From positions 4,464,001 to 4,528,000 of the forward strand of contig OZ251222.1 in the NCBI GenBank assembly GCA_965240325.2: DNA of 64,000 nucleotides. The letters are read 5' to 3'. Positions within the stretch are counted from its first letter, which is position 1. Every line of letters starts with the position of its first letter. The translations under genes were made by a program, and so were the position numbers. This DNA is from Rebecca billardiae RCC1528 (Eukaryota; Protista; Haptophyta). Positions 6,065 through 30,140 of the stretch are shown one piece after another. Below the pieces are notes generated by a model. It searched no databases. It saw only the letters and a program-made list of their open reading frames with translations, and was not told the origin of the DNA.

Positions 6065-9040
6065 TCAGTGGTGATGCCGCCTGCGATGCCGGCTGCGATC
6101 GGTCATCACCGCGACCGGCCGGCTCATGGGCGGGCTCGCCTTGAAGTAGTTGCTCGGATCCTCCCACGGACGCGAGCCAGGGTCATCGCGCGCGTTGGTG
6201 TACGGCAGGTACTGCGAGGACGGACCGGAGTACGCCTCCGCGTTCCACGACGAGTCGACGGGCGCGGGGCACGGAGCGAGGAAGTCGAGCGCGGGCGGCA
6301 CCTTGACGTTCACGCGCCCCGCCTCCTTGACGGACGCGGGGGCATTCTTGACGCGGAAGAAGTTGCCCATGCCCAGCACGAGGTGAGCCTCCTGCACCGC
6401 CGCGCGCGCGCGCATCGTGGGCCGGGCGCGCGCCACCACGCGGCGCCGGTGAGAAGTGGTGGTGGTGGCGGCTCGGCGCGGCGCGCGCACCATGTGGCAG
6501 TGCATGAACCACACGCCCGGGTTCTTGGCGACGAAGCGCAGGTACGCCCACGACTTGTACATGACGGTCACGGTGTCGACGCACAGCGCGTCCTTCTCGT
6601 TGAGGCTGGCGCGGTCGCGCTTGGGCTCGTACCGGCCCTCGCCCATGCCGAGGACGTGGAAGCAGTGGCCGTGCAGGTGCCACGGGTGCACCTCGGTCGG
6701 GTCGTCGTTGTTCAGCACGAGGTCGACCACCTCGCCGTACTCGATGTCGAACGCGGCGGCGCCGAACTGCTTGTCGGCGGACTGCTGCCCGCGCCGGATC
6801 AGGTTGTACGCGAGCGAGGCGTCGAGCTTGGTGCCGCCCTGCTCCATGAGCGACTGCGCGAGGAAGGGCACGCGCGGCTTGTCCGCGGTGGGCAGCAGCG
6901 GGCTGCCCACCTCGCTGAACGAGATGTTGTACACCGCCCAGCGGAACCACTCCGCGTCCTCGGGCGCGGACACCATGCCCGGCCCGACCAGCTTCGCCGT
7001 CTCGGGCGGCAGCTGGCCCGGCCACCACACGTTGAAGAGCATGTCGATCGGCTCGCGCAGCTTCTGCCCGCGCTCGGCGCGCGGGACGGGCGGGTTGTAG
7101 CCGTCCACAAAGCTGCCCTGGCCCCGGCTCGGCGGGAGCGGCTTGAACATCTGCGTCTCGATGCCGACCCGCACCATCTTGTCGCGCTCCTCGTTCGTGA
7201 GCGACTGGTACCAGTTCACGCCCGTGTACCCGGAGTCGAGCTCGTCGCCCGCGCCCACGTAGGACAGGACGGCCTGCGCGGCCGGCAGCCTGTAGTTGAC
7301 GTTGGCGCCTGCGCGCGCACGGCGGTCGCGTCCGCGCGTGGGCGAGCGCCCCAGCACGCGCGCCCCCTCCCCGCCCCGCCCCGCCGCCGCCACCCGCGCG
7401 CGCGTCCGCGGCCGCGCGCGCGCGGCCGCACCGGTGCAGAAGTCCTTGAGCGTCATCGGCCCGCCCCACTTGACGTCCGGGTTGCCCACGAGCGGGGCGA
7501 GCTCGTTGGTGCACTCGGGCGAGGCGGCCTGCCGCCCCCACGTGGAGACGACCATCGGGTAGTTGGTGCCCGTCTGCCCGCTCGCCTCGAGGACGACCGA
7601 GTAGCGCTGCCCGAGGTTGATCATCAGCGAGTCCACCTTCGTGGGCTGCAGCCACACGCCGCCGGCCTGCACCACCGTCATCGAGTGCCCCGGGATCGTC
7701 AGGTTGTACGGCAGCAGCGCCCCCGCCGCCACGATGCGCAGCAGGTACGACTTGCCCGGCTCCACGAAGAAGCGGCTGAAGTAGTTCACGTCCTTCTTGT
7801 TGCACGGCGCGGCTGGGAGCTGGCGGTCGCCGGGCAGCCAGCCGGGGCCAGCGAGGCCCTTGCCGTTGACGAGCAGCGACTGCGGGTTGCCCACCCAGTA
7901 GCTGCGCCGAGCGCGCGCAGGGAAGAAGCCCGCAAGCGCGCGAGAGCCCGGTCAGGCGCGCACGCGCCGTGGCGCGCGGGCAGCGGGCGCGGGCACGCGC
8001 GCTCGCGGCGCGCGCGCATACGGGTACTGGCGCGAGAGGCCCCACTCCATCGAGTCGCCCGAGTGGTTCCACCAGCCGTGGATCAGCATCACGGGCAGCT
8101 CCTCGTCGTAAGGCGGGATGCCCTTGGGCCGCTCGGTGCCGCGCCGTGGTAGGATCACAAACGCGCCAAACATGCCGTCCTGCACTGCGCACCGCGGGGG
8201 CGGCGGGCGCGGGCACGGGCGGGCGGGGCGCGGCGGCGGGGGGGGGGGGGGGGGGGCACGCGATGGGAGGGTCGCGCGCCACGCGCGCGCGTGTGAGGGG
8301 GAGATGCCGATGCGCGCCGCTCGCCCGCGCCGCCGCCGCGCGCTCCGCACAGCCGCGCGCCGCCGGGCCGCGCGCGCGCACTGTCCAGGCCCATGTGCGC
8401 GTGCCACCAGTGGGTGCCCGGCGCCTCGTCCGCCGTGTCGATCACGTACGTAAAGCTGCGGCACGCGCGGCGGCACGCGGTCGCGCGCCTCGCGTGAGCC
8501 ACCCGCGTCCCGCGGCGTGCGAGGCCCGAGGCCGCGCGCGCGCAGCGCGGCGCACCTCTGGTTGAAGCCGATCGGGCACTGCGTCACGTAGCCGACGCCG
8601 TCGTACCACTGCTTGCCGCGCATCTGGAGGCCGTGCCAGTGCACGGTCATGCCCTGCCGGATGTTGTGCCCCTGGTCCTTGCGCACCATCAGGTTTGTCA
8701 CGTGCACCTCCACAATGTCGCCCTGCTCGACGCGCACCTCGGGGCCGGGGAATTGGCCGTTGCACGTGATGTGCTGCCGCTTGTTCCCGTGGCGGTCGGT
8801 GCCACCGTAACAGTCCGGGTCGAGCTGGCGGTTGATCGTGAACGTCCAGTCGTACTTGACCACGCGCCTCGAGTTGCGGTGCCAGGGATGCCCCTCGAGC
8901 GACGCGTCACGGTCGCCGAGCATCAACTTGTCAGGGTCCTCGCGTACCGGCTTCGCGAGCCAGATCGCGCACAGCGCAAGAAACGCGAGAGAGACGAGCG
9001 CACACGCGCCCATCACAGCCGAGCGGCGAGCCTCCGCCAT
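6065..9040 (-). CDS. Multicopper oxidase (laccase/ascorbate oxidase-like), N-terminal signal anchor, 5 introns
   Basis: Copper motifs TVHWHG, WWHAH, HPWHLHGH, WFMHCHM|EAHLVLGM; GT-AG introns about 8456-8555, 8186-8381, 7902-8021, 7308-7433, 6392-6490. Confidence 0.95.
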
Positions 9041-9370
9041 ATTCGCTGGCTGCCTCGCCACGCGTCGCACGAGACCGCCGCGCAGCCGTCCGTGAGTTGC
9101 GCCGAAAAGCCGTGAGATACGCGCGATCTCCGCCGAATACTTATTGAGGCGAGTACTCACCCCATCAGGACCAAATGTGAGATCGAGGAGTTGCGCCAAT
9201 CACCAATCACCTCGGCAGCGGCCGCGGTCCTTCCCTGCTCTTGAGCGCTTCACGGCTTCACCGCCCGCTGCCCACAGGCCACAACCGGAACCAGGTGACA
9301 CCCGTCGCCAGGCTCGGTTGCCGGCGCTTCCAGGCGGCGATCGCGCGCCGTTCTGGGCGGCAGCGCGGCG

Positions 9371-9841
9371 ATGGCGGCGGGGCAGCCGCTGAGTTACGGC
9401 AATGTCAACACGCTGAATCCGTATACGGACGCGTACGTGGGCGTGGCCTCGGGCAACCTCATCACCGCCAGCCCGGGCGTGCTGAACATCACCGGCCTCT
9501 CGGTCGGCAACCTGCTCGCAGGAAGTCCTGGGCTGGTCAACATGCTGGGCATGGGCACGGCGGCGTCCTACGTCGCGTCGCCGCAGCTTTTGCAGGGCGT
9601 CGGGCTGTTCACGGGAGGTAACGCGACCGAGTCGCCGTTCGGCGTCTTTGTCGCTGGCGCGAGCCTGGGTAACGCGATGACGACATCACCGCAGCTCGTG
9701 TCTGCGACGGGAGCGGTGGGGGGTATCGCTGCAGCCGCAACGCCGACGCTGCTGTCAGCCGTGGGGTGGACGGCGCTCCCAAAGGAAACGGACGACGGAA
9801 CGGACAACCCACCCGAGCCTGCACGATGGGATCTGAGATGA
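9371..9841 (+). CDS. Uncharacterised 18-residue-repeat protein, paralog 1 (156 aa)
   Basis: Intronless ATG ORF with coding codon bias; near-identical protein to 10261-10695 with mostly synonymous or conservative changes. Confidence 0.85.
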   Translation: MAAGQPLSYGNVNTLNPYTDAYVGVASGNLITASPGVLNITGLSVGNLLAGSPGLVNMLGMGTAASYVASPQLLQGVGLFTGGNATESPFGVFVAGASLGNAMTTSPQLVSATGAVGGIAAAATPTLLSAVGWTALPKETDDGTDNPPEPARWDLR

Positions 9842-10260
9842 TGACCCGGCCACCGCTTGGTGCGGGTCCAGGCATAGGATCTGGCCAGGGCGTCCAGGGC
9901 GGGACACCTTGGTGCAGTCCTGCAGCTTGGCAGGCGGTGGGCTGCCTGCCACTTCTCGCCGACGACTCGGACGCGTCAGCGGTCGCAGACCTCGCAAAAT
10001 GATGCTTCGTCGAGTTGCTGTCTCACTCACACTGGCATCATGATGTCAGCTTTTGAGTGGTGTCACACCGCCCCGCCCACCCGCGCCGGCGCGGCGGCGC
10101 CATCGAAACTCATCAAAACTGAGATCGCTGGTCCAAGAAGCACACCCGCCATCGTGAGCGAGGGACCTCTCCTCGAGCTGGCGCCACTCGCCTCGCTGGG
10201 CGAGGGCAACATCGCGGGATTTTTGGTCTCCGCCAGCCGGTTGCATACGTATCTATCCAG

Positions 10261-10695
10261 ATGCCCGCGGAGGGCGTGGTGTATGGCAACCTCAACACGC
10301 TGAACCCGTATGTCGACGCGTACGTGGGCGTTGCATCCGGCAACCTCGTCACCGCCAGCCCGGGTGTGCTGAACATCACTGGCCTGTCGGTCGGCAACCT
10401 CCCTGCTGCGAGCCCAGGCCTGATCAATATCCTCGGCATGGGCACGGCGGCGTCCTACGTCGCATCGCCACAGGTGATTCAGGGTGTTGGCCTGTTCACA
10501 GGCGGTAACGCGACCGAGTCACCCTTTGGCGTCTTCGTCGCAGGTTCGAGCCTGGGCAACGCGATGACGACATCGCCGCAGATCGTATCTGCAACGGGCG
10601 CCGTAGGAGCCATTGCCGCAGCCGCGTCGCCGACGCTTCTCTCTGCCGTGGGCTGGACACTCGTTCCGGACTCGGACCCAGACGCGGCTGTCTGA
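10261..10695 (+). CDS. Uncharacterised 18-residue-repeat protein, paralog 2 (144 aa)
   Basis: Paralog of 9371-9841; same repeat register. Confidence 0.85.
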   Translation: MPAEGVVYGNLNTLNPYVDAYVGVASGNLVTASPGVLNITGLSVGNLPAASPGLINILGMGTAASYVASPQVIQGVGLFTGGNATESPFGVFVAGSSLGNAMTTSPQIVSATGAVGAIAAAASPTLLSAVGWTLVPDSDPDAAV

Positions 10696-10737
10696 GCACA
10701 GAGCCGTGCCGATAGTACCACATCTATATATATATAT

Positions 10738-11298
10738 ATGTCTAGCCGTCCTCGAAGCGCCTGCGCCATCCAGATGCAGCGAGGAGGCGAGGCACACGCC
10801 GCAGCTTGGAAGACGCAGCTCAAGAGCCGCCAAGCCGCACGAGAGCGAGGCACGAGGCACCATCGTGCAGAGGCGGGCGCCCTGAAAGATGCCGAGGCCC
10901 AGTGACAGCTGCAGCCATCAGGACAGTGGGCGCTTCCGAAACGAAGGGCGTCGTCCGCTGCGTGAGCGAGAGAGACACAGGGCCGCGTCGGTCGGCTCGG
11001 CGCCAGATGAAAGAATCCAGGCCACCAATTGGCTGTCCAGAGCCACCATGCCAACCCGCTCAAAGCTCAGGAGCAGCACAACGAGTTAGCTAGTTCTCGG
11101 GGCCGTTGTGCGCGCGCACAGAGCAGGCTCGAAAGACCCTCGTGGCACGAGAAGAGGGTGGCCAAGATGGCAGCCGGACTTGCGCTCGGCCGCCTGCCTC
11201 GGGCCGATTGGCAGGCAGGTGTTGATACCATACGGCGCATTGCGCTCCCACCGTCCTCTTAGACAATCAGTTATATTGTGCCAATAACCCCACATATA
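10738..11298. mobile_element. Longer copy of the dispersed repeat sharing ends with 636-772
   Basis: Shared left 14-mer and right ~45-mer; TGTCTA...TAGACA inverted hexamer; follows (TA)n. Confidence 0.5.
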
Positions 11299-12915: not shown

Positions 12916-13845
12916 TCAAACGGCTTCAAGCCCGACATCCGCGCGTGGAGCTCCCACTGCTGGGGCAAAAGCAACACCTGGTCGTCGCCACGTCACCGGA
13001 AAGTGCTCGTCCGGCAGCCGGCCGCTTCCATCTGCGGGCACGTACTTCTTCCAGAGGCGTCCCACCTGCACGTCAGGCCTGAACGCCACGCAGCTCGCGG
13101 GCACGAAGTGCATGCCAAGTCCACGACGCGTGCGGTCGGCGGTTCGGTTCGGGCCCGAGCCGTGCCAGGTGCGCCCGTCGTGAATGCCCGCGCCCCCTGC
13201 CTCGACGCGCACCATCGCGATGTCGAGGCTCCCCGTGTCTACCCCCTCGCGCGCGGCCGCATCGTGCAGGAGTGCGTGCCTGTCCTCGTCGAAGAAGTGC
13301 TTCGCCGAGCCACGCCGGCCGTCGCCCCAGCGGTGCGAGCCAGATACGTACTCCAACGGGCCCACCTGGTCATCCATGCGATCGAGCGCCAGCCACACCG
13401 TCACCACACTCGACGAGAAGTCCTCAAAGTATGTCGTATCTCTGTGGAAGACCAGCGGGCCCGCGCCTGGCGGCTTGAGCCAGACCTGGTCCTGTGCGAC
13501 GCGCGTGCCGTCCCAGCCAGCGAAGCGTGCGACGATCTCGCCCAAGGCCGGGCTGTGGACCAACTCGGCGAATGCGCGGTCGGCCTTCCATATGTTGATA
13601 ATCTGCAAGGTCCTGTTGCCTGCGCGCTGCGCACTTCCACCGGGAAACTTGTCCGGAGCGACGCCAGTGTCAAATTCGCCGCGCAGGACGGCGTCGAGGC
13701 GAGAGGCGAGGCGCGCGGCTTGCTCCGCAGACACGAGGCGATCGATGGTTACATGGCCACACTCGCGGAACGACTGAGTGGCCCGCTCGTCGGGCACGGC
13801 CGCCTCAATCCATATGTCCGCCATCGTGGAGAGCTTGCCATGCAT
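12916..13845 (-). CDS. Phytanoyl-CoA dioxygenase (PhyH) family Fe(II)/2-oxoglutarate oxygenase
   Basis: WLKPPG, FHRD (HxD), VTVWLALD, GPLEYVSGSH, WHGSGPN...RR; intronless; start may be the second Met (13824). Confidence 0.92.
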   Translation of the reverse strand: MHGKLSTMADIWIEAAVPDERATQSFRECGHVTIDRLVSAEQAARLASRLDAVLRGEFDTGVAPDKFPGGSAQRAGNRTLQIINIWKADRAFAELVHSPALGEIVARFAGWDGTRVAQDQVWLKPPGAGPLVFHRDTTYFEDFSSSVVTVWLALDRMDDQVGPLEYVSGSHRWGDGRRGSAKHFFDEDRHALLHDAAAREGVDTGSLDIAMVRVEAGGAGIHDGRTWHGSGPNRTADRTRRGLGMHFVPASCVAFRPDVQVGRLWKKYVPADGSGRLPDEHFPVTWRRPGVAFAPAVGAPRADVGLEAV

Positions 13846-15435: not shown

Positions 15436-17789
15436 TCACGCGTCGAGGGGCCCTCGCCCCACAGGCACGAGCAGCAGCTCTGGCGTGAGCGCGGGCGAGA
15501 CGGCGCCGGCGCACTGCACGGAGAGCGCGGCGGCTGCCAGCCCGACGCGCACGCACTCGGCCTCGGGCAGCCCGCGCAGGCACGCGGCGGTGAAGCCCGC
15601 GGCGAGGCAGTCGCCCGCGCCGCTCGTGCACTCGACGGCGCGCACGGGGTGCGCCGGGTAGTACTCGATGCGCGGAGCCGACGTGGGGCTGTCGCCCGGC
15701 TCAGCGCGCGCGGCCAGCAGCACGCCGCGCGCGCCGCGCGTCGCGACGACACGCGACACGCCGTGCGCCAGCACCGCGCGCGCCGCCGCCTCGAGCGCCG
15801 CGTCTGGCTGCCCCGCGCCGCCCTCCGCCGGCGCGCCGCGCCGCTCCCCGCGCCCGTGCAGGGCGCCCGCGATCGCCATCAGCTCGTCCGCGTTCGGGAA
15901 CAGCGTGTGCACCCCGCGCAGCGCGCCGGCGGCTGCGAGCGCGGCGGCCTTGGGGACCGAGACCGGCTCAAGGAAGAGAGGCACGGCGCGCGCGGCGCAC
16001 ACGCGGCCGAGCGCGCCGAGCGCGGCCGCGCTCAGGTTGGCGTCGGCGAGGACGAGGCCGCACAGCCCGTCGTCGCGCACGCCCGAGGCGGTGCGCACGC
16101 CGAGGGCGGCGGCGGCGACGTCCGCGGCCCAGCCGGCGTCGAGCGCGGCGTCGAAGATCACCATGTCCGCGACGGCCGCGGCGAGCTCGCCGTCCGCGTC
16201 GTGCAGCGCCGCGTACGTCGCGGTGCGCGCGCCGCGTACCGTGCGCACGTGCGTCGTGTCGACGCCCGCGCGCGCGCACTCGGCGAGCGCGAGCGCGCCG
16301 AGCGCGTCGTCGCCGACCGCGCTGCCGAGCACAGCCGGGCTGCCGAGCCGGGCGAGCGCCTCGGCGACGTTGCGCCCTACGCCGCCCGCGCTCAGCCCGA
16401 TCGTGCCCGGGTTGGACGTGCCGCGCACGAGCGGCCGGCTCGGCAGCGGCCGCGCCGTCAGGTCGGCCACGATCCCGCCGACGACGAGCGCGCGCGCGCT
16501 CGGCGCCGCGCTCGGCGCCGGCGGCGCGCCGCCGATGGCGCGCACGAGCAGCGGGCGCGGGGGCGGGGCGCGCGCCGAGATGGCGGCGTACGCCTCGGCG
16601 GGCGCGCGCACGCGGCGCATCAGCGCGCACGCCAGCCGCGCGCCCGCCGCCGCGTTGTTCCGGATCAGCGCCATGTTGGCGCGCAGCGAGTCGCCGTCAG
16701 TGAGCTCGGCCACGCGCGCGAGCAGGTAGGGCGTGGTGGCGGCGCCCGAGATGGCCGCGGCGGACGCGTCGCCGAGCGCGCGCTGGATGGCCGCCTCGAC
16801 GCGCGCGCCCGCCGCCGCGTGCTCGGGCGGGATCGGCGCGCACACGAGCTGCCCCGAGCCGAGCCGCAGCTGCAGCGCCGCGTGCACCGCCGCCGCCGCC
16901 TCCTCCTCGCCCGCCCAGCACAGCGGGGACGCATGCCCCGAGTCTGCGCTGAAGAAGGCGGGGAAGGCGCACCCGGCCGGGCCGAGCGTGCCCACGGTGA
17001 CGCCGGCGGTCTCGAGCACCTCGAGCGTGCGCCCGATGTCGAGGATCGACTTGACGCCCGCGCACACCACCGCCACCGGCGTGCGCGCCAGCTCGGCCAG
17101 ATCGGCCGAGATGTCCAGCGAGTCCTGACCGCCCCGGTGCACGCCGCCGATGCCGCCCGTCACAAACACGCGGATGCCCGCGAGCGCGGCGAGGAGCATC
17201 GTCGCGCTGACCGTGGTCGAGCCGTGCGCGCCGAGCGCGACGACGTGGGCCAGGTCGCGCCGCGACACCTTGCGCACCTGCCCCGCGCCCAGCCTCGCCA
17301 GCCGCTCGAGCTCAGCCGCGCTGAGCCCGACGATGCAGCGGCCGTCGAGCACCGCGATCGTGGCGGGCACCGCGCCGTGCGCGCGCACGATGTCCTCGAC
17401 GGCGCGCGCGGTCTCGAGGTTCTGCGGGTACGGCATGCCGTGCTGCGGAAGGGCGCGCCGCGCGCGCGAGGCGGCGCGGGACGCAGCGGCGGCTGAGGCG
17501 CGGCGCGCGGCGGCGCGCGCACCCGACACGCCGGCGCCGGCGCCGAGCGCGACGCCCCGGCACCGGCGTTTGCGCGGCGCGGCGCGGCGCGAGGCATGGC
17601 GGGCGCACGGCGGCGCACCGTGATGATCGTACTCTCGAGCGCGACGACCGCGTCGTTCGCGCGCACCGCGTCGGCCACGGCGGCGCTGACGAAGAGATGA
17701 GGGCAGAGCTCGTCGTCAGCGGACGAGGGCGGCTGCAGCATCGGCGACGAGGCGGCGAGGTGGCGGCTCAGCGTGTGCAGGCGGTGCAT
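15436..17789 (-). CDS. psuG: Bifunctional pseudouridine-5'-phosphate glycosidase / PfkB pseudouridine kinase
   Basis: VVALESTIIT|HGMPYPQN, TGGIGGVHRG, DISADL, CAGVKSILD (PsuG); GGVGRNVAE and GAGD (PfkB); intron 17443-17618; N-terminal RLHTLSRHL. Confidence 0.95.
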
Positions 17790-18198
17790 GGGCGCCGGGC
17801 TGGGGGGCGTGAGCGAGGCTGGCGGCGGCGTCCCCGACGTCATCTGCGTCGGCCGCGTGCGGTCAGGGTCGGTGGGGCGTGCGGCCGGCCGAAATTGTGC
17901 TCGGCGGGCCAGGTGATCGCGGAGTCGCGGACGGCACGCTGACGTGCGCGACTGCGACGGCGGCGCTGCGGACGGAACCAGTGCGGACACCCTTGGCGGC
18001 AATGCAGAGGGTGACTCCCTTGGCAGAGGAGAAGCCAGTCTGAGTTGCGGCCCTGGATGAGGATGGTCATGGTCAGCAGCCCCGCCCACTGATCGCGAAC
18101 CGTCAGTCATGACTCATGAGTCACAGTGATCACACGCGACGGCTAGAGTCGGCTGCGCGTGAGAGAGACACAGGCTGGAGTCGCTGGCAGCCGACCCG

Positions 18199-20979
18199 CT
18201 AGTGATGATGGTACGCCAGGCGGCGCGGCGAGAGGCGCTGGTGGGGCGAGCGCGCGCGCATCGCCGCCGAGGCTGCGAGCGCGGACGATGCGTACGAGCT
18301 CAGAGTGCCCGGCGGCGCGCCGTGCGCGGGGCAGGCTGCTGCGTACGCGCCTCCGTGCGCGTAGCCCGCGCGCGAGGTCCCGCGCGGCTGCGCCGTGGGC
18401 GGCTTGGGCCGCGCGCCGCCGTGCCGGGCGGCGAGCGCCCCCTCGCGCTCCGGCGGGGCGGCGGCGCTCGGCCGGGGCGGCGGCGCGGCCACGTCCCCTC
18501 CGCGCGTGCTCACAGGTGGCGAGGGTGCGCGCAGCAGCTGGCGCGCGGCACTGCCGGTCGTCGGCGCAGCGGCCGAGCCGCCGTCCGCGCCGTGCGGTGG
18601 CGCGGCCGTGCTCTCCCTGCGCGCGCGCGCGAGCTCGGCCGCGCGCGCCTGCATCGCGGTCGGCGCGCGAGGCCGAGGCTCCTCGGGGGCACGCGGCAGC
18701 AAGGGCGGCGGTGGCGCGTGCCTGTCTGCGGCGGCGGGCGGGCGCGCGGCGGAGGGCGCGGCGCTGCCCGCGGTCGCGAGGGCCAGCCAGTCCTGCAGCG
18801 TGCCGCCGCCCGCCTGCGTCGGCGCGCCGAGCTGGTTGGGCTGCCGGGCGCGCTCAGCCATCACCACCAGCCGCGCCGCGTTGGCCTGTGCGCCCGCGAG
18901 CCGCAGCCGCAGCGAGCGCACCTCTGCCGACTCGGCCGCCGCCGCCTCGGCGGCGCGCTCGTCAGCCGGGTGCGGGTGGAGGGGCGAGCCGAGCACGGCG
19001 CCCGCGTCCGCGAGCGCCCTCGCGCGCCGCGCGCGCGCCGCCCGCAGCGCCGCGTTCGCCGAGCTCGGCGGCATCCCCAGGTGCACGCGCAGCCGCTCCA
19101 CCTCCGAGGCGAGCTCGGTGGCAGCGGCGTCCAGCTCGGCGTTTGCGCGGTGCAGCGCGTGCGCGCGCGCGTCGGCGGCGCGCGCCGAGTCGAGCGCGTC
19201 GCGCGCGAGCTGGGCGAAGGTGCCGTCGCCGCGCTCGAGCGCGGCGATCTCGGCGCACAGCGCCGCCACGTCCGCGTGCGCCGGCTGCTGCGCCGGCGGC
19301 TCCAGCCGCGCCGCGCTCGCCTCGAGCCCGCCGAGCGCGGCGCCGAGCTCAGCCGCCATGCAGCCCAGCTGCGCGAGCGCGCCGCGCGCGCGAGAGAGAC
19401 CCTCTGCGCGCTCCGCCGCGTCGGCGAGCGCGGCGCCGACGCCGTCCTCGATCTCGTCGAGCGCGAGGAGCAGGGCCATGCCGTCCGCGGGCGGCGGCGG
19501 CGGCTCCCACCCCACGCGCGCCACGCCGCCCACGCCGGCCGCGCCCGCCGCGCGTGCTCCCTCGCGCGCGGCCGCCTCCCGCTCTCGCGCGCCGCGCACG
19601 AGGGCCGCCTCGCGCGCGGCGCTGAGCTCGGCGTGCGCGGCTTCGGCGTCGGCGGCGGCGCGCGCGGCGGCGCGGGTCTGCCTCGCGAGCATCTCCACGA
19701 GCGACGCCTTCTCCTCGGGCCAGTGCGCCGCCGCCTCGAGCAGCTCCGCGGTCGCGCCGTCGAGCGCTGCGGGCGGCGCGTGTGCGAGCTGCGCGCGCGC
19801 GCCGTCCGCGTCCGCGCGCGCCTCGTCGACGGCGGCGCGTAGGCGGTCCGCCTCGGCGCGCGCGTCGGCGAGCTCGGCGGCGAGGGCGGCGGGCGAGGGC
19901 TCGAGCGCCGCCACGCCGCGCGCCTCCTCGCGCGCGGACGCCAGCGTCCCCTCAATCCGTGAGCGCACGTCGGCGAGCGCGCGGCCGTGCTCGGCCGCTG
20001 CGCGCGCGCGCTCGGCCGCGGCCGCGCCGGCCGCGCGCTCGAGCTCGGCGGCGAGGGTGGCGGCGCGCTCGCGCAGGGCGGCGTTCTCGGTCTGCGCGGC
20101 GGTGAGCGCGTGCTCCGCGCGCTCGCGCGCCGTCAGCGCGTCGGCGAGCGCGTGCGCCGCGTCGTCCCCCGCCGAGGCGTCAGCCGACGGCGGCGGCGGC
20201 GGCGGCGGCGCGCCCGCCGGCCGCGGCGCGCCCGCGGGCGCGGCCGCGCGCGCGCGCTCGTGCGCGGCGGCGCCGGGCGAACTGGCCTGTGCGAGCTGCG
20301 CGCGCAGCGGGCCGAGCTCGCTCAGCGTGCTCACCGCGTGCAGCACGGGCAGCCGCTCGTCGAGCACGCTGCCGATCTGCTCGCGCACGCCCGCTGCCAT
20401 CAGCGTGAGGGAGGTGTGGCGCGCGTCCGCCGCGGCCGCGCGCTCGCGCAGGCGCTCGATCTCGGCGCGCGCGTCGTCGAGCGCGGCGAGTGCCTCGGCG
20501 CGCTGCCGCACCGCCGTCATGCACGCCTCCTGCAGCTGCGCGGCGGAGCGCACCGACTGCCGCCGCAGCTCGTCCATCTCCGCCGCGAGCGTGCGGTGCA
20601 GCTGGCCGCTCGCCTCCTCGCACGCGTCGGCGCGGCGGACGGCGTCGGCGGCGTCGGACTCGGCGCGCGCGCGGGCGGAGGTCTCGGCAAGGAGGCGCTC
20701 CCGCGTGCGCGCGGCCTCGCGCTCGCTCTCGCCCAGGCTCGAGCGCAGCAGCTCGAGCTCGACGCGCGAGCGCTGGCCCGCCGCGAGCGCGCGCACGCGC
20801 TCGGGCGACGGCGGGAGCTGCGGCCGGCGGGTGGGCGACGAGCCGTGGGCGCTCGAGCGTGGGGAGGTGGGCGAGCGTGGACCACCGCCGCTGTCCGGGC
20901 GCGCGCGCACGGGCGGCGGCCGCGGCGGCGGCGGCGGCGGCGCGGCGCCGACGCTGCCGGTCAGGTAGCGCGCATGCAT
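18199..20979 (-). CDS. Ala/Glu/Arg-rich coiled-coil protein, unknown function
   Basis: Long ORF with heptad-like segments and GC3 codon bias on the minus strand. Confidence 0.7.
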   Translation of the reverse strand: MHARYLTGSVGAAPPPPPPRPPPVRARPDSGGGPRSPTSPRSSAHGSSPTRRPQLPPSPERVRALAAGQRSRVELELLRSSLGESEREAARTRERLLAETSARARAESDAADAVRRADACEEASGQLHRTLAAEMDELRRQSVRSAAQLQEACMTAVRQRAEALAALDDARAEIERLRERAAAADARHTSLTLMAAGVREQIGSVLDERLPVLHAVSTLSELGPLRAQLAQASSPGAAAHERARAAAPAGAPRPAGAPPPPPPPSADASAGDDAAHALADALTARERAEHALTAAQTENAALRERAATLAAELERAAGAAAAERARAAAEHGRALADVRSRIEGTLASAREEARGVAALEPSPAALAAELADARAEADRLRAAVDEARADADGARAQLAHAPPAALDGATAELLEAAAHWPEEKASLVEMLARQTRAAARAAADAEAAHAELSAAREAALVRGAREREAAAREGARAAGAAGVGGVARVGWEPPPPPADGMALLLALDEIEDGVGAALADAAERAEGLSRARGALAQLGCMAAELGAALGGLEASAARLEPPAQQPAHADVAALCAEIAALERGDGTFAQLARDALDSARAADARAHALHRANAELDAAATELASEVERLRVHLGMPPSSANAALRAARARRARALADAGAVLGSPLHPHPADERAAEAAAAESAEVRSLRLRLAGAQANAARLVVMAERARQPNQLGAPTQAGGGTLQDWLALATAGSAAPSAARPPAAADRHAPPPPLLPRAPEEPRPRAPTAMQARAAELARARRESTAAPPHGADGGSAAAPTTGSAARQLLRAPSPPVSTRGGDVAAPPPRPSAAAPPEREGALAARHGGARPKPPTAQPRGTSRAGYAHGGAYAAACPAHGAPPGTLSSYASSALAASAAMRARSPHQRLSPRRLAYHHH

Positions 20980-21117
20980 CGCCGCTGCACAGCCGCCATC
21001 CAAACGGAGGGTGCCCGGCAGACGGGCCGTTTCAGTCCGGCATCCGGCGCCGGAGGTTCAAAACGGGCCGTCGCCGCCGGCCGAGGCGCCCGAGTCCCCG
21101 CCAGACGCGCACGACCG

Positions 21118-21563
21118 ATGCACTCGCCGCGGCTCACGTCGCCGAGCGCGGTGGCCAAGGCGGCGGTCGGCGAGCCGATCGCGCGCAAGGCGATGAAGCA
21201 CAACGCGAACGCCGATGTGAAGCTCGCGCGCGCGCGCCAAGCCATCCTGCGCCGCTGGAAGCTGCGGCAGCAGCTGCGCGAGAGGCAGCAGCTCGCGCAC
21301 ACGCAGCGGACGGCGGTCGCCGCCACCTCGCCCGGCCCGCCGCCCACGAGCCACGCCGAGCCGTCCAAGCGCCGCGCGTCGAGCGAGGCCGACGACGCCC
21401 TCGGCGCCCTCCGCGCGCGCATCAGCGCGCTGCGCGCGGACAACAGCGATCTGATGCGCTCGCTCGATCAGGCGGACGCGCGCGCGCACGCGACCGCCGC
21501 CGTGCTCGCGCGCAGCGTGCGCGAGTGCGAGGACGTCGAGCTCGGCGCGCTCGTGCACGCGCA

Positions 21564-21595
<32 letters not shown>

Positions 21596-23306
21596 ACTCG
21601 TCCGAGGCGGAGGGTCGCTCCCTGCGCTCACAGCTCGAGGGCGCGCGCGCTGAGCTCGAGGGCGCGCGCGCCGCCGCGGCCGCGCGCGAGGCCGCCGAGC
21701 AACGCAGCGCGGCGCGCGCGCTCGCGGCCGAGCAGGCGGCGAACGGCGCCGAGGCGCGCGCGCGCGAGGCCGAGGCGCGCGCGCACGACGCGTGGCGCGA
21801 GCTGGTGGGTGCGCGCGCCGAGGCGGCCGCTGAGCGCGAGGCGGAGGCGGTGGCGCACGCCGCGGCGCTCAGCGAGGCGCGGGGGGCGGCGCGCGACGCC
21901 GGCGCACGCGCGGACGGGGCCGAGGCGCGCGCGGCCGAGGCGGAGCGGCGCGCGGCCGAGGCGCGCCGCGCGGCCGACGCGGCGCGCGCGGACGCGGCCG
22001 GCGCGGCCGCGCGCGCGGACGCGGCGGACGCGGGCGCGGCGGACGCGGAGCGCCGCGCGGACGCGGCCCTCGCCCGCCGCGCCCACGCCGAGGCCGAGGA
22101 GCAGCAGGCGGCCACGCGCGCGGCGGAGGCGGAGGCGCGCGTGGCGGCCGAGGTGGCGGCGTTGCGCGCCGAGGCCGAGAGCGCGCGCCTCAAGGCGGCG
22201 GAGGCGGCGCAGGCGGCGGCGCGCGCCGCCAACGCCGCCGCGCGCGCCCAGGCGGGCGAGGAGGCGGCGCGCCGAGCGGCCGCGCGCGCGGAGGCGGAGG
22301 GCGGCGCGCGCGCGGACGCCGCGCTCGCGGCCGCGCGCGCGGACGCGAGCACGCTGGCCGACGCGCTGAGCGCCGCGGAGGCCGAGGCGCGCGCCGAGCG
22401 CGCGCGCGCCGAGGCGGCCGAGGCGCGCGCGGCCGGCGCGGACGCGCGCTGCGCCGAGTGGAAGGCCCGCGCCTCGGCCGCACTCGACGAGCTGAGCAGC
22501 GGCGCGCGCGCGGCGGCGCACGGCGCGGACGCGGCGCTCGGCAAGGGGGCGGCGGCGCGCGGCGCGCCCGCGCCGGCCGCGCACCTGCCGGCGGCCGCGG
22601 CGGCGGCGCGCGCGCGCGCGCGGGACACGCCGCGCCCGGACGCCCCCGACGTGCCGCGCGCAGCCGCGCCGCACGAGGCAGGCGGCGGCGCGGCGGCGGC
22701 CGCGGCCGCCCCGGCCCCGGCGCGCGCGCCGGGCGCTGCGCCCAAGGGCGGCGGCGGGGCGGCGGCGGTCGGCTCGCCGCCGGCGCGCCGCGGCGTCGAG
22801 CACGCGCCCTCGCTGTACGAGCGTGCGCGCCGCGGTGCCAGCGCCGCCGCGCGCCCCTCGCCCCCGGCCGCCTCGCCGCCGCCGCCGCCGTCCTCGCCGG
22901 CGCTGCCGCCGTCCGCAGAGCAGCCGCAGCCGGCGCGCGCGGCGCCGGCGAGCGGCGACGCGCCGTCGGCAGCGCCGACGGCGGGCGCGCAGCCGGCGGC
23001 GCCGGCCGACGACGCGAGCCGCGCGGCGCTCGCCGTGAGCACGGCTCTCGCGCGGCGCGCCGAGCGCGAGCGCCGCTGGCTCGCCTCCGAGATGGCGGCG
23101 GTCACGGAGCTGCACGCCGCGGCGGTTGCGCGCGCGCGCTCGCGCTCGCAGCCGCGCGCCGCGCCGCCGCCCGCCGCCGGCGCGGCAGCCGACACGAACG
23201 CGAGCGAGCGGCTGCGCCGCTCTGCGGCGCAGCGCGAGCAGTTGCAGGCGGCGATGCGCACGAGCGCCGCGCGCTACGCCAAGCTCGACGGCGCTCGGCG
23301 CGACTC

Positions 23307-23338
<32 letters not shown>

Positions 23339-23601
23339 CCGAGCCGGACGCGGGCGCGAGCCGGCCCGCGAGCCGCGCGCCGACGCCGCCGGGCGTCTCG
23401 CCGCGCGCGCCGTCGGCCGGGACGGCGCTCGCGGCCGAGCGGCTGCACGACAAGCAGGAGCACGCGCGCGAGCGGCACGAGCGCTGGCTGGAGCGCGCCG
23501 CCGCCGCCACCGCCACCGCTGCGGTGGAGAAGAAGGCGCCGGGCGCCGCGCGGCCGGCCCATCGGCCGCCGCTCGCAGCGCGCTCGGCGAACGCGCACTG
23601 A
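21118..23601 (+). CDS. Ala-rich coiled-coil protein, unknown function
   Basis: ATG at 21118 within the 19987-23601 frame; long AE/AR helical stretch; divergent from the 20979 gene. Confidence 0.7.
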
Positions 23602-23882
23602 GCCGCGCAGGGGCAGCGCTGCTGCGGTGCCCGTAGCCTGCGCCGCCGCCGAGCGTCAGACAGCTTCCGATCGCATCGGGCGAGCCGGGGCGTGTGCTCG
23701 CGGCGGCCATGCTGACGCGCGGACAAGCACTCTATTGACGAGACTGATTGATGTAGGATTTGGCCCAAACCTCGCAAAATCAGATCTCCACCCTGCGATG
23801 CGGCAAGTGGCAGTGTCGCAAGGAGGGCTGCCGCTGCCACTGGCTCCATGGCCTCCGTCTGATCAGCGCTTCCCCCGTGTGC

Positions 23883-25417
23883 ATGGTTGGCCGGGGCCGC
23901 GCGCCCTCGCCAGCTCAGGCCCGGGCCGAGCGGGCGGCGCCGCGCAAGCTTGCGGCGCCGAGCGCCATCCCTCTCCCGGCCAAGTCTGCAGGCGCGCCCC
24001 GCTCGAGCAGTGCGCCGCGCAGCCGCTTGTCCGAGGGCCGCTCGTCCGCTGGCAGCGGCGAGAGCTCGCTGCCCGCGCGCAGGGCGGGCCGGCCGCCGCT
24101 GAGCGCGGGCGCGGCGCGCGGCGCGGGCTCGAGCGGCCCGTCGCGCCCCGACGCCGCCCGGCCCGGCCGGCCTCGCGACGCGGAGCAGCTGCTCGACGAG
24201 CCGCTGAACGGGTGGGGCAGCGGCGGCACCGACGCGCACGGCAGGGCGCTCTCGGACCGATCGGACGCGGGCGCGGGCGCCGACGGCACGTCGGCGGCCG
24301 GATCGTCGCGCGACAGCTCGTTCCGCCGGCTGCGCCCCTCGGCCGCCGAGCGCGCTCGCGCCGAGCGCACCGGCGTCGGCCGGCGCTCGCTCGGCGAGTC
24401 GCCGCGCCGCGTCCGCCCGCACGGCCTGAGCGCCGGCCGCTCGGCGTCGGCGTCGAGGGCGTCGAGGAGCGCGCCCGCGTCGCCCGATCGCGCGCAGCAG
24501 CGCGCGAACGCGCCCGCCGGCCCGAAGGGCACGCCCTCGCCCGTGAACGGCCAGCGCGCGGGCGGCGGCGGCGCGGAGCAGCGCGCAGGCTCCCGCTTCC
24601 GCGCGCGCTCCGACCGGCCTCACACGGCGACCGGCGCTGAGCGGCCGGCGGGCCGGCGGCTGCTCGGCGAGCCCGGCGAGCCGAGCGCGCAGGAGGCGCA
24701 CGCCGCGCGCGCGTACCCGCCCCGCGCGCCGCGCAGCCTCCGCCCGGGCAGCGCCGGCACGGCGGGCGCGGGCGCGACGCGGCGTGCGCGCGGCGCGCGG
24801 CCGCAGTCCGCGCGCCGCGACGCGCCGCTCCGCGCGCAGGCCGGCGCCGCGGCGGGGTTTGCGGACAGCTTCGCGCTGCTCGAGGCGGAGGTGGCGCTGA
24901 GCGAGGCCGCGGCGGCGCCGCCTGGCGCGATGGCGCGCGGCGCGGACATCGACCTCCCCGACGAGGACATGCGCCCGTCGGGCCGGCGGCCGAGCGGCAG
25001 CCTCGCGGACGGCGGCGGCGCCGATGGCGGCGGCGGCGGCGGCGGCGCCGTCAAGTCCCCCACGCTGCTCGCGCGCTCGATGGATGCGCTGGCTGCGGGC
25101 GTGAGCCACCTGGGGCTCGATCTCACCGCGTTCTCGAGGCCCGTCTCGCAGCCGCCGCCACGCCCGCCGCCGCCGCCGCCGAGGCGAAGCGTGCCGCACG
25201 GCGCCGAGGGCGGCGACGCGCGCGCGGCGCACGCGGCGGCGCACGCCGTGCCGGCCGCGTGGTCGGAGCGCCAGCCGAACCCGCCCGCCGACGGCGCGGG
25301 CGGCGCGGGCTCGGCGCGCGGGAGCTCGCCGGACACGGACTCGGACTCGGACTCGTCCGACGGCCTCGCCTTCCCCGACCCGGCGCCCGCCTCGCGCCCG
25401 TCCATCGTGCCCAAGCT

Positions 25418-25456
<39 letters not shown>

Positions 25457-28400
25457 GCCCAAGGCGGCGCCGGGCGCTCCCCCCGCCGCGCCGCCGCCGC
25501 TCCCGCCGATGCCGCCGATGAAGCCGCTCGACATGGCGTCGGTGGCGGCGAAGCGCGAGCCGATCGTCGGCGAGCGTCCGGACAGCGCGGACCGCGCGCC
25601 GTACACGCCGCTCGGCGAGGTCGTACAGCGGCTCGCGCGCGAGAGGGAGGCGGGCGCGGGCGGCGCGGGCGGCGCGGGCGGCGCGGGCGGCGCGGGCGGC
25701 GCGCCGCCGATCGCGCTGCCGCCGAAGCTCGACCTGGGCCGCGTGGCGGAGGCGCAGCAGCCCGCGCCCAGGCGCTTCTCCCTCGTCGCCGACGTGCGCG
25801 GCGGCGAGCGCCCCAAGTGGGTCGTCCCCTTTGCCGAGCTCGAGCTGGGGCGGCGCATCGGCGTGGGCGCGTACGGGGAGGTGTACGAGGCGCGCTGGCG
25901 GCGGGACACAATCGCAGTGAAGCGGTGGACGCACCAGGGGCTGGACGAGAAGAACGCGCGGCTGCTGCGCGAGGAGATGGAGATCATGTCCGAGCTGCGC
26001 CACCGGCACATCGTCCACTTCCTCGGCGCGTGCCTCGAGGCGGAGCAGATGTGCATGCTGTTCGAGCACTGCGTGTGCTCCATGCTGCAGCTGCTGCGTG
26101 ACGAGGGCGTGCACCTGAGCGTGCAGGCGACCATCGACTACTGCAAGCAGGCGCGTGCGCGGCGCGCGCGCGGAGGAGGGCGCGCGCCCGCCGGCGCCGC
26201 GCGCGCTCACACGCGCCCGCCCCGCGCTCGCGCGCGCGCCCGCTCCGCGCGCCCGCCGCTGCCGCCGCCGCGCCCCGGCCGCCCGCGCGCCGCGCGCTGC
26301 GCCGGTCGCCTCGCCGCGCAGGTCGCGCTGGGCATGTTCTACCTGCACTCGTGCACGCCGCCCGTGCTGCACCTCGACCTGAAGGCGGCGAACGTGCTGC
26401 TCGACCGGCACGGCGTGGCGAAGGTGTGCGACTTCGGGCTGTCGCACGCCAAGCAGGGCGCGGCGATCGTGACTGCGCGCATGGGCTCCCCGCAGTGGAC
26501 GGCGCCCGAGGTGCTGCGCGGAGAGCCGCACGACGAGTCTGCGGACGTGTACTCGTACGGGCTGCTGCTGTACGAGATGGCGACGCGCGCGCTGCCGTAC
26601 GAGGGGATGGACACGTACCAGGTCGTGGTCGGCGTGATCACCAAGCTCCTCCCGCGGCCGAGCGTGCAGCCCTCCGAGCGCGCGCCGCCCACGCTGCTCG
26701 CGCTGATGGCTCGCTGCTGGGCGGAGGCGCGCGCAGAGAGGCCGCCGTTCGGCGCGGTGCTCGACGTGCTGGAGGGGCTGGTGCGCGAGCACGGCGCGCC
26801 GCCCGAGGGCGAGGCGCTGCCCGGGCTGCTCGCCGCCGAGTCCAACCCCGCCTCCGTCCGGCCGCTGCCGCCGCTGCCGCCGCACCTCTCGCGGCGCGGC
26901 CGCGATTCGGGCTCTGCCGCCGACGGCGGCGGCGCCGACTCGGACGACGAGCTCGCGGCCGGCGGCGGCGGCGGCGGCGGCGCGCGGCGCTCGGGGACGG
27001 CGCGCGGCGCGCCCGAGGGGCTCACCGCGATCGCGCACTTCGACTACGCCGCGAAGCGCCCGGACGAGCTCTCCTTCCAGCGCGGCCACCGCATCCGCGC
27101 GCTCGGCCCCGCGAGCACGCGCGGCTGGTGGCGCGGGCGCGTGGGCGGCAGGGTGGGTCTCTTCCCGGAGAACTTTGTCACGTTCCAGGCGGCGACGAAG
27201 GCGTACTCCGAGCTGGCGACGACGCGGCGGGCGGGGGCGGACGGCGGCGAGCGCGGCGCGGGCGGCGCGTCGCCGCACGACGCCGCGCGCCGCGCTCCGG
27301 CCGGGCCGATCATTGAGGAGGCGCCCCTTGACGCCCTCCTCGAGTTTGAACACGCGCCCGGCGGCGGCGGCGGAGCTGGCGGCGGCGGCGGCGCGGACGC
27401 GGTGCTCGGCCGCGGGCGCGACTCGCGCGTCGTGCGCGCGCGCGACAAGCGCACGCTCGAGCGCGTCGCGGTGAAGCTCGTGCGCGCGCGCACGCAGCCG
27501 GCGCGCGCGCGCGCGCTGCGCGAGGCCTCGCTGCTCGCCGCGCTCGGCTCGGACGCGTCGGCCGAGGGTTCCCACGTCGTGCAGCTGAGGTACGTGGTGC
27601 TCCCGCCGCCACCGCCGCCGCACGCGGGCGGCGGCGGCTCGGACGGGGCGGGCGGCGGGTTGGTCGCGCTCGTGTGCGAGCTGCTCGACGGGGGCGACCT
27701 GTTCGACCGGATCGAGGCGTGCGGCCCGCTCGAGGAGGCGGCGGCGTCGCGCGTCGCCGCAGACGTCCTCCTCGGCCTGGCGCAGCTGCACGCGCGCCGC
27801 ATCGTGCACGGCGACGTGAAGCCCTCGTCTGTGCTCTTCCTCTCGAGGGCGGCGGACTCGCCCGCGCGGCTGATCGACCTGAGCGAGGCGCGGCAGCAGC
27901 GGGTGGGCGCGGGCGGCGCGGCGGAGCCGCTCACCGGGCTGTGCGGCAGCCCGGACTACGCCTCGCCCGAGGTGCTCTCGTGGCTGGGCGGCGCGGATTC
28001 GCGCGAGGTCGCCGTCGACGCGACCGACGCCGACGGACACGGCACGGGCCGCGCGCGCGCGCGCCGCTCGTCCGCGCGCGGCGTGGGGTACGGCCCGCCG
28101 ACAGACCTGTGGTCGGTGGGCGTGCTCGTGTACGTCGCGCTCTCCGGCTTCCCGCCGTTCCACGGCGACGACGACGCCGACATGCTCGAGCGCATCCTGC
28201 ACGGCGCGTTCGACTTTCCGAGCACGCTCGGCGGCGGCGCGCCGACCGCGTGGGGACGTGTGTCGCCGCTCGCGCGCGACTTCATCGGCCGGCTGCTGCT
28301 CGTGGAGCCGTCGCACCGGATGGACGTGGGCGCGGCGCTGCGGCACCCGTGGATCCGGGACACGGTGGACATGGCGGCGGTGCACTCCTCGCTCGGCCAG

Positions 28401-29840
28401 CTGCGCACGCGCGCCGTCTCGCCCGGCTGGGCCGGGCTGCGCCGCGCGGCCGCCAGCTCGGTGCGCGGGCCGACGCCGCCGCGCGCGCGGCCGCGCGCCG
28501 CCGCCGCCACCGCGCGCGAGCTCGGATCCGGCGGCGGCGGCGGCGACGGCGGCACGGGCGCGCGGCGCGTGACGCCGCCCGCGACGCCGCCCGCGACGCC
28601 GCCGCGGCCCGCCACCGCCGCCGCCGACGCGGCCGCCGACGCCGCGGACGCCACCGCCGCGCAGCACGGCTGGGCGCACGCGGCCGGCGCGCGCGGCGGC
28701 GCGCGCGGCGACGCGGCCGGCGCGCGCGGCGCGCGCGGCGGCGGCGGGTTGAGCTGGTCGCTGCAGCAGGAGGGCATGGTCTCGACGTTCGGCCGCTGGC
28801 TGATGGGGCGCGCGGTGGGCGAGGGCAGCCTGCGGCTGCTCATGGTCGGCCTCGACGGCGCGGGCAAGACGAGCCTGCTGCACCGGCTGCGCACAGGAGC
28901 AGGCCTGAGCGCGCCGCCCCCGCCCACCGTCGGTGCGCGCGCGCGCGGTGCGCGCTGGCAGCGCGCGGCGCGCCGCGCGCGCCCCGCGCGCCGCGCGCGC
29001 GTGACCAGCTCGCGCCCACGCCCCGCGCGCGCCCTTCGCCTCGGTCGTCGCAGGCCTCTCCGAGGAGAGCTTCGACTTCAAGCGCTGCCGCCTCCGCGTG
29101 CTCGAGCTGGGCGGAGGGCCGAGGGTGCGCGCGCACGGGCGGGCGCGCGCGCGGCGGCCGCGCATGGCGGCAGCGTGAGCGCCCGCCGCGCGGCCCGGGG
29201 CGGTGGGCTGGCTGACGCGCTGCCCGCCCGCGCCGCCGCGCGCGCCCTCCGCGCGCGCAGCTCCGCGCGCAGTGGCGAGAGCACGCCTCCGCGCTCGGCG
29301 CCGCCCCGCACGGCCTCATCTTCGTGCTCGACTCCTCCGACCTCGCGCGGCTGCCGAGCGCGCGCGCCGAGCTGCACGGCCTCGTGGCGGAGGGCGGGCT
29401 GGGCCGCGCCGCGCTGCTCGTCTTTGCCAACAAGCAGGTGCGTCCCGTGTGTGCGTCCCGTGTGTGCGTGTGCGCGCGTGCGGCGGGTGTGGCGGTGCAG
29501 CGTGCGGCGTGCTGTCTGTGTCTGCCCTGTCTTGTCTTGTCTGCCCTGCGCGCTCGAGGAGGCACACACACACGCGCGCACACACGCGCGCGCGCTGGGC
29601 TGGGCTGGGCTGGGCTCACACGCGCCGCCTGGGCCCTGCGCGCCTCGTGGCCTTGCGCGCCCCACCCCGCAGGACCTGCCGAGCGCGCTGCCTGCCGAGC
29701 GCATCGTGAGCGCGCTCGCGCTGAGCGCGCTGCCCGCGACGATGCAGTGGAGGCTGCAGCCCGGCTCGGTGCTGAGCGGGCACGGCGTGCTGCAGACGCT
29801 CGAGTGGCTCGCTGCCAAAGGCCAGGCCATCGACGACTGA
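23883..29840 (+). CDS. Multidomain signalling protein: TKL kinase + SH3 + CaMK-like kinase + C-terminal Arf-like GTPase
   Basis: Kinase 1 GVGAYG, AVK, HLDLKAAN, DFG, WTAPE; SH3 AHFDY..ELSF..GWW.G..GLFPENFV; kinase 2 GGDLFDRI, HGDVKP, CGSPDYASPE, DLWSVG; Arf GLDGAGKT, PTVG, FVLDSSD, FANKQ|D; introns 26151-26321 (GC-AG) plus three in the Arf part. Confidence 0.88.
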
Positions 29841-30140
29841 GGCTGAGGTCTGAGCCAGAGTCCGGCTATCGCCGCTGTCAGCCACGGACACGGGCGGGAG
29901 CTGATGACGTGATGACCCGCACCAGTATCCTCGTCTGTCGTCGAGTGTTGGCTGCTGTTCGTATGCCGTCACGCTCAGCCGCTCGTGCCTCATCTCCATC
30001 AATGACTGGGAGTAATATAAATACAGTACGCACCTTGAAAGTGAGCAATCGCGCACAAAATTTCCAATTACCGCCGGCATCACCCGCATCGGAGAATCGG
30101 GACCGCTCGTCGAAATCCACGTCATCATCACCATCTCAAC

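Follow-up and report, generated by a model that had tools for sequence, protein, structure and literature searches.

What are two small, adjacent genes of the haptophyte Rebecca billardiae RCC1528, whose products repeat a single 18-residue unit and match no catalogued family? The pair, called here paralog 1 and paralog 2, occupies positions 9371 to 10695 of the window, that is, the whole 64,000-nucleotide stretch of DNA that was analysed (assembly GCA_965240325.2, contig OZ251222.1, positions 4,464,001 to 4,528,000 of the forward strand). Having weighed the evidence, we lean towards the view that these are real tandem genes of a lineage-restricted family, whose products would form a cytosolic right-handed β-helix and may assemble end to end.

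A tandem pair of genes built on an 18-residue unit

A first-pass annotation, made from the letters of the DNA, had described two small proteins with a strict 18-residue period ending in SP or TP. Both open reading frames (ORFs) lie where it had placed them and the period is present in each. The two proteins have the same layout, with a short N-terminus, a half unit, six 18-residue units, a second half unit and a tail. The features of the pair are as follows.

9371..9841, plus strand: paralog 1 gene, 156 codons plus stop, apparently intronless; the only stop-free frame, with the lowest ratio of nonsynonymous to synonymous substitution rates (dN/dS); GC content at third codon positions (GC3) 0.79
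9395..9421, plus strand: paralog 1 N-terminal half unit YGNVNTLNP, corresponding to repeat positions 10-18; placed by register and kept in paralog 2
9422..9745, plus strand: paralog 1 six full 18-residue units, residues 18-125, each a predicted turn of a β-helix; placed by register (z = 9.1 at shift 18) and by DSSP on the model
9746..9769, plus strand: paralog 1 C-terminal half unit TLLSAVGW, placed by register and the same in paralog 2
9770..9838, plus strand: paralog 1 acidic, proline-rich tail, predicted disordered; predicted local distance difference test (pLDDT) 56-58, dropping to 45
9842..10260, no strand: spacer between both genes, unlike between the copies, similarity being confined to the coding parts
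10261..10695, plus strand: paralog 2 gene, 144 codons plus stop, 86% identity to paralog 1, GC3 0.75
10282..10308, plus strand: paralog 2 N-terminal half unit YGNLNTLNP, placed by register
10309..10632, plus strand: paralog 2 six full 18-residue units, residues 17-124, placed by register
10633..10656, plus strand: paralog 2 C-terminal half unit TLLSAVGW, placed by register
10657..10692, plus strand: paralog 2 short acidic, proline-rich tail, from the translation

We measured the period by comparing the protein with itself under BLOSUM62 at shifts 1 to 59, with 300 shuffles as the null. Beside the peak at shift 18, self-similarity was also raised at shifts 36 and 54 (z = 5.7 and 6.0). All remaining shifts gave z of 1.2 or less (0.1 at shift 6, 0.3 at shift 5, -0.3 at shift 20), and sub-periods of 5, 6 and 9 were not found. 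Read in this register, the finer points of the annotation hold as well: the full units of both paralogs end in SP or TP with zero indels, position 7 is invariably G, position 18 invariably P, and position 11 is G or A. Tandem Repeats Finder detected no DNA-level repeat in the gene pair, and the 18-residue period is therefore upheld in the protein and not through recent DNA duplication.

The near absence of charges, also claimed at the time, is borne out by the composition of the 126-residue core, which holds two D/E and no K, R or H and consists to 83-85% of G, A, S, T, V, L, N and P. The N-terminus is not hydrophobic, with a mean hydropathy over the first 20 residues of -0.45 in paralog 1 and 0.04 in paralog 2, and the highest 19-residue Kyte-Doolittle means (1.36 and 1.54 for the two paralogs) stay under the usual 1.6 threshold. 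In agreement with the annotation, we saw no signal peptide in either paralog, by inspection and hydropathy and with no dedicated predictor. Since none is seen by inspection, the pair is most likely cytosolic.

Both copies are retained under purifying selection

Both ORFs are real, intronless, tandemly duplicated genes under strong purifying selection. The two proteins align without gaps, 115 of 134 residues being identical (86%). Within the 384-nt gapless core, 54 of the 70 base differences fall at codon position 3, and the differing codons divide into 45 synonymous and 15 nonsynonymous, which upholds the earlier remark that the differences are mostly silent and imply selection. The dN/dS of paralog 1 versus paralog 2 was 0.092 by NG86, 0.087 by LWL85, 0.084 by YN00 and 0.057 by maximum likelihood, far from a value near 1, with dS at 0.75-1.16. 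The repeat core shows 13 residue changes between the paralogs, all of them conservative but one Leu/Pro.

The DNA similarity of the two copies is limited to the coding part. Over 250 bases on each side, flank identity was 0.61-0.62, against 0.60 +/- 0.014 in shuffled sequence. Frame 0 of the plus strand is the sole one of the six frames that is stop-free in both copies, and the two copies share the position of the ATG and end in an in-frame stop 12-24 codons past the last half unit. Their GC3 is similar to that of a neighbouring gene for a phytanoyl-CoA dioxygenase (PhyH; 0.77). Taken together, the substitution rates, the decayed flanks, the frame, the GC3 and the conserved start and stop indicate that the duplication is old and that both copies have been retained under purifying selection.

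Two other gene models were considered and rejected. An antisense gene would have to use the frame that shares third positions with the coding frame; this frame is partly open, which is usual in GC-rich genes, but it contains stops in both copies and has twice the dN/dS. A single gene running across both ORFs was set aside because a conserved ATG and an in-frame stop are present separately in each ORF, with an unconserved spacer in between.

Eight loci of the genome make up the family

The first-pass annotation had dealt with the pair only. The pair itself stands, but its membership in a larger family of this genome had been overlooked. A six-frame search of the genome (72 Mb in 41 contigs), queried with paralog 1, then with a diverged member and then with profiles, revealed six further loci, eight in all.

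C24:837.4k, minus strand: family member, six-frame own-genome search
C18:2113k, minus strand: family member, six-frame own-genome search
C1:5028.4k, plus strand: family member, six-frame own-genome search
C1:22.2k, plus strand: family member, six-frame own-genome search
C10:1403.5k, plus strand: family member, six-frame own-genome search
C12:276.5k, minus strand: family member, six-frame own-genome search

These six loci are strongly diverged, with an identity to paralog 1 of only 22-32%, and are made of 18-residue units, rarely 19 or 21, that end in S, N or T followed by P. Across the family members the grand average of hydropathy (GRAVY) is 0.3-0.9, and GC3 spans 0.75-0.96 over the eight.

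A family profile was assembled from about 58 units out of nine proteins, with the register read off the alignment; a one-unit hidden Markov model was too short for parsing the diverged members. G7 is found in 51 of 59 units, P18 in 47 of 57 and N12 in 35 of 55. Position 17 is S in 34 of 56 units and otherwise N, T, A or D, and position 16 is A or G in 40 of 56. Large hydrophobic residues occupy positions 2, 3, 5, 8 and 13, while positions 1, 4, 9 and 14 are variable and often polar, and position 6 varies too.

Spliced members were analysed exon by exon. In the C1:22k member, a 90-nt GT...AG stretch (L004 1720-1809; G000:C1, about 22.4 kb) splits a unit after 13 residues. Once it is excised as an in-frame intron, the 13 + 5 residues yield an exact 18-residue unit with N12 and P18 in place. 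This member probably has another donor after 'AYTVSYG', at about 1929, and would then consist of at least three exons. The C24 member has a GT...AG intron downstream of its last unit. In several members the start Met lies only a few residues ahead of the first unit, which leaves room for a signal peptide in none of them.

Relatives in public collections are scarce

The family was not recognised by the annotation, nor did we find it in curated collections. Pfam and NCBIfam scans of both proteins gave zero families at an expectation value (E) up to 10, and a sequence search of the PDB gave chance matches only for the single protein (E 0.68 or worse) and zero with the family profile. A word-indexed search of 5.8 billion proteins returned no match for paralog 1 and, for the P0002 protein introduced below, only itself; with the nine-row family alignment as the query it was uninformative, swamped by low-complexity candidates and not returning P0002. 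The ESM Atlas gave no usable match, its recognition being low, and pattern scans of JGI metagenomes, GTDB genomes and IMG/VR gave no close relative. A search of the literature for an 18-residue β-helix repeat or a haptophyte β-solenoid found nothing relevant.

An exhaustive HMMER scan of 1.84 billion representatives with paralog 1 produced two matches, P0001 and P0002. The former, a proline-rich low-complexity protein of 849 aa with repeats of about 36 residues (TPGSPQHSTPGLTES...), was rejected as a spurious, composition-only match. P0002 is an unnamed protein of 170 aa (E 1.3e-4) that contains five to six units, each 18-19 residues long and closed by SP or DP. Its source is a single 2.4-kb contig of the Logan assembly SRR30872635, and it has no cluster mates. 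An LPRET motif follows its repeats, similar to the LPKET in the tail of paralog 1. Judged by its sequence, P0002 is a true family member, the sole foreign one found.

The paralogs within the genome score only E ~1e-6 even in the 72-Mb search, and members equally distant would be invisible to a single-sequence scan of a library; the rarity of the family is therefore suggested, not proven. Altogether, these searches suggest that the family is lineage-restricted, or almost absent from public protein sets.

The repeats are predicted to fold as a right-handed β-helix

We modelled paralog 1 and P0002 with AlphaFold2, using the nine-row family alignment behind both. The monomer prediction, one of the checks proposed with the annotation, gave for paralog 1 a parallel β-solenoid with one turn per repeat, at a mean pLDDT of 64.4 and a predicted template modelling score (pTM) of 0.52, the five models spanning pLDDT 51-64. 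According to DSSP, each unit of this model has two strands, one of 5 residues at positions 2-6 and one of 8 residues at positions 9-16, with breaks at G7-x8 and at S17-P18-x1, a pattern that recurs with perfect periodicity. At the two ends (residues 1-9 and 153-156) pLDDT drops under 50, and the model has no predicted cap.

The P0002 model reached a pLDDT of 70.7 (77-87 over the first 60 residues), with a strand pattern like that of paralog 1. In P0002 (L021 1679-2191) the repeats are followed by a charged C-terminal helix, residues 118-141 at pLDDT 77-80, which the pair lacks and which, in this model, may act as a cap or a coiled-coil.

Foldseek found no significant match in the PDB (best E 1.5), and its weak rows were nearly all β-solenoids. 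An exhaustive structure search was made with VIA-align, in which Z up to about 13 is common among repeat folds, so that its matches establish architecture, not homology. For paralog 1 these included the phage tailspike 5w6f (Z 13.0, root-mean-square deviation (rmsd) 2.5, 147 residues), a pectate lyase of small size (1ee6; Z 12.5, rmsd 2.4, 136 residues), pentapeptide-repeat proteins (Z 11-12), and the CARP entries RP2 3bh6 (Z 10.6), CAP 1k4z (Z 10.3) and TBCC 5cya (Z 10.1). The bactofilin BacA (2n3d) superposed at Z 10.1 with an rmsd of 3.0 over 100 of 103 residues, on a model of pLDDT 64 and with other β-helices scoring as high or higher. For P0002, the top three were CAP C-terminal domains (1k4z, Z 11.5, with 1k8f and 2b0r; Z 11.0-11.5), a generic solenoid likeness of a predicted model, along with TBCC 5cya (Z 10.0), RP2 (Z 8.7) and the bactofilins 2n3d (Z 8.9) and 6ria (Z 7.7).

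Left-handed hexapeptide helices superpose on both models at an rmsd of 10.6-11.0 Å only, and the models are therefore right-handed. With moderate confidence, we propose that the predicted fold is a parallel right-handed β-helix of about seven turns, one 18-residue unit per turn. The pair is a new sequence family inside a well-known architectural class.

A corner code and a possible mode of assembly

The conserved spots of the unit would be the three corners of a roughly triangular coil, at G7, at G/A/F11-N12 and at S/T17-P18. We infer this geometry from the family profile and the predicted strand pattern. The Asn12 residues would be stacked as a ladder, of the kind that occurs in many β-helices, and hydrophobic residues at 2/3, 5, 8, 13 and 15 would alternate inward and fill the core. 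Such a coil, with three corners and a filled core, would account for a unit length that is strictly kept and for indels that are barely tolerated. At the third corner S17 can be replaced by N and D, turn formers that cannot be phosphorylated, which speaks for a structural rather than a purely regulatory SP corner.

The outward positions of the pair are mostly small or apolar. The stack would begin and end in half units, with no predicted cap and a nearly uncharged surface, features that together make an end-to-end association by β-sheet extension possible. This could lead to nucleotide-independent filaments or bundles. Tandem bactofilin paralogs are co-assembling partners, and the two paralogs retained here for so long might also assemble with each other, possibly as a heteropolymer. 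Open-ended, uncapped solenoids are described as polymerising by sheet extension (PMC10192328), and bactofilins, with 6 windings of about 17 residues and flexible tails, form nucleotide-independent end-to-end filaments, one of them from an oomycete (bioRxiv 10.1101/617639). By analogy, end-to-end self-assembly would be the most likely mode of action of the pair, and one that we put forward tentatively.

The annotation had already proposed an uncapped β-solenoid polymer. Of this proposal the solenoid has the backing of both AlphaFold2 models, at moderate confidence, and of their structural neighbours, right-handed parallel β-helices almost throughout, and "uncapped" fits the half units and the low-confidence tails, while the polymer is what we infer.

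A bolder version is also conceivable, in which the pair would represent a eukaryote-born β-helical filament system of a haptophyte-type alga, independent of bactofilins, with open-ended helices of 18 residues per turn that stack into nucleotide-independent filaments and a tandem pair that forms a heteropolymer. The row of Ser/Thr-Pro corners could then double as proline-directed kinase sites that switch assembly on and off. We consider this version rather unlikely.

Several points weigh against a cytosolic, right-handed β-helix that assembles end to end. The two models are of moderate confidence and, with one shallow nine-row alignment common to both, they are not independent. Foldseek gave no significant match (best E 1.5), and Z values of 9-13 are frequent in repeat folds, so that the architecture is common and homology is not shown. 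The predicted helix of P0002 could cap the stack, in which case open ends may not be a family-wide property. Moreover, very hydrophobic surfaces could equally signify lipid or partner binding, and the absence of a signal peptide in the pair is a judgement by eye.

Known β-helix families and alternative readings

In its presumed way of working the pair comes closest to bactofilins and CARP domains, without belonging to either. With bactofilins (PF04519; BacA 2n3d, TtBac 6ria) it shares a length of about 150 aa, the lack of a signal peptide and the tandem paralogs. Its core, some 110-125 residues long, would also resemble theirs if the prediction is right, as a right-handed, roughly triangular β-helix with 6-7 windings of 17-18 residues, a hydrophobic interior and tails that are short and flexible. 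It differs in its G / GN / SP corners, its strict period of 18 and its almost complete lack of charges. PF04519 (bactofilin/DUF583) matched neither protein at E up to 10 nor the six-frame whole genome, while the controls were matched in 6 genomes.

Two other repeat classes resemble the pair in outline only. Hexapeptide-repeat proteins, which are left-handed β-helices, also have 18 residues per turn and a triangular coil; the pair, however, shows no period of 6 (z = 0.1) and no Pfam Hexapep match, and its models are right-handed. Pentapeptide-repeat proteins have 20 residues per coil, whereas the pair has no signal at shift 5 (z = 0.3) or shift 20 (z = -0.3) and no Pfam match, and the structural likeness at Z 11-12 is generic. 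A hydroxyproline-rich glycoprotein or arabinogalactan module was considered as well and rejected, because the SP dipeptides stand isolated, one in every 18 residues, and a signal peptide is lacking.

The main rival to the β-helix that assembles is a β-helix that does not: a monomeric or dimeric cytosolic scaffold or adaptor like CAP, TBCC or RP2, which would bind a partner on a flat face. CARP domains (PF08603, PF07986) are eukaryotic, cytosolic right-handed β-helices of similar size and are the usual small cytosolic β-helices of eukaryotes; CAP C-terminal domains lead the structural neighbours of P0002, TBCC and RP2 come next, and CARP entries also appear for paralog 1. Pfam, however, gave no such match at E up to 10, and canonical TBCC and CAP_C genes lie elsewhere in this genome, against whose domains the family aligned in hhalign with a probability of 0.04% and 0.08%, respectively. 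The core contains no basic residue, which excludes an arginine finger as in TBCC and RP2. In addition, the strand-swapped C-terminal extension of CARP domains is not evident in the pair, and a near-uncharged surface would be unusual in a soluble adaptor. We therefore regard a CARP-like role as possible but unlikely.

The annotation had also named a functional amyloid. In a more specific form, this would be a polymer like curli, Fap or chaplins, or another secreted matrix polymer, reaching the outside by unconventional export. CsgA is built in a comparable way, from short one-layer repeats that are stacked, with open edges formed by whole or half repeats and a Gly-Asn pair at a turn; a GN pair also stands mid-unit in most units of the pair, the architecture is that of an open-ended repeat solenoid, and FapC (9u4u, E 5.5) is among the weak Foldseek rows. 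Curlin repeats, however, have 23 +/- 5 residues with N...Q motifs and a QX10Q kernel, and the secreted CsgA adopts a left-handed solenoid of two sheets (PMC10192328), unlike the 18-residue unit and the right-handed helices that our models match. Neither QX10Q, which is excluded in paralog 1 by the positions of its only Q residues (5, 72, 75 and 108), nor the N/Q-flanked motif was found, no Pfam Curlin_rpt or chaplin match was obtained, and no signal peptide was seen. Each tested curli feature fails, and we consider such an amyloid improbable.

A further candidate is an ice-binding, antifreeze or otherwise surface-active β-solenoid with a flat Thr/Ser/Ala/Asn face. The small size of the protein, its regularity, its lack of charge and its richness in T, S, A, G and N would suit such a role, and ice-binding solenoids are among the weak structural neighbours (3ult, 8x1p and 6a8k with Foldseek; 3p4g at Z 8.5 for P0002). 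But neither DUF3494 nor any other ice-binding family was matched in Pfam at E up to 10, no signal peptide was seen, and no regular TxT/TxN ladder was found at a fixed outward position, positions 4, 6, 9 and 14 being variable. We consider this role quite improbable.

The annotation had further suggested a membrane-inserting hairpin array, which would amount to a small barrel or pore. The high GRAVY throughout the family and the almost complete lack of charges would agree with it, but both models are parallel solenoids and not antiparallel meanders, the predicted strands of 5 and 8 residues are short for spanning a bilayer, all 19-residue windows lie below a hydropathy of 1.6, and no targeting peptide was seen. 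The suggestion is thus unsupported, and we hold it to be highly improbable.

Finally, that the ORFs are chance products of GC-rich DNA, where long spurious ORFs are plentiful, or a decaying duplicated segment, as the absence of the exact proteins from the public protein collection might hint, has next to no probability and is already contradicted by the evidence in hand: a dN/dS below 0.1 despite randomised flanks, a signal confined to one frame, the same positions conserved in eight paralogs and one foreign homolog, and a period preserved across the intron of the C1:22k member.

Genomic surroundings of the pair

Upstream of the pair, and head to head with paralog 1, lie exons of a multicopper oxidase (7952-9199, minus strand; Pfam Cu-oxidase_3, E 6.9e-20). 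The likely starts of the two genes are about 300 bases apart, and the divergent promoter region may be common to both. Downstream, the PhyH ORF of 309 aa (12916-13845, minus strand) matches its full profile at E 2.1e-28 and is apparently intronless. Neither neighbour suggests a functional link to the pair.

A (TA)7.5 microsatellite at 10725-10739 lies 30 bases past the stop of paralog 2 in GC-rich surroundings and may belong to a 3' end signal. Elsewhere in the window, GC content rises to extreme values of 0.78-0.84 at 16001-30000 and 40001-42000, compared with 0.62-0.70 near the gene pair.

Significance of the family

Should the prediction be true, the family would be a minimal β-solenoid whose 18-residue unit is unusually strict and whose corner code, G / GN / SP, is simple. 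It would offer a compact natural template for the study or engineering of β-helices. If the proteins do not polymerise, this would be a lineage-specific orphan family, of interest chiefly for annotation. If they do, it would provide a second, independently evolved bactofilin-like cytoskeletal filament in a eukaryote.

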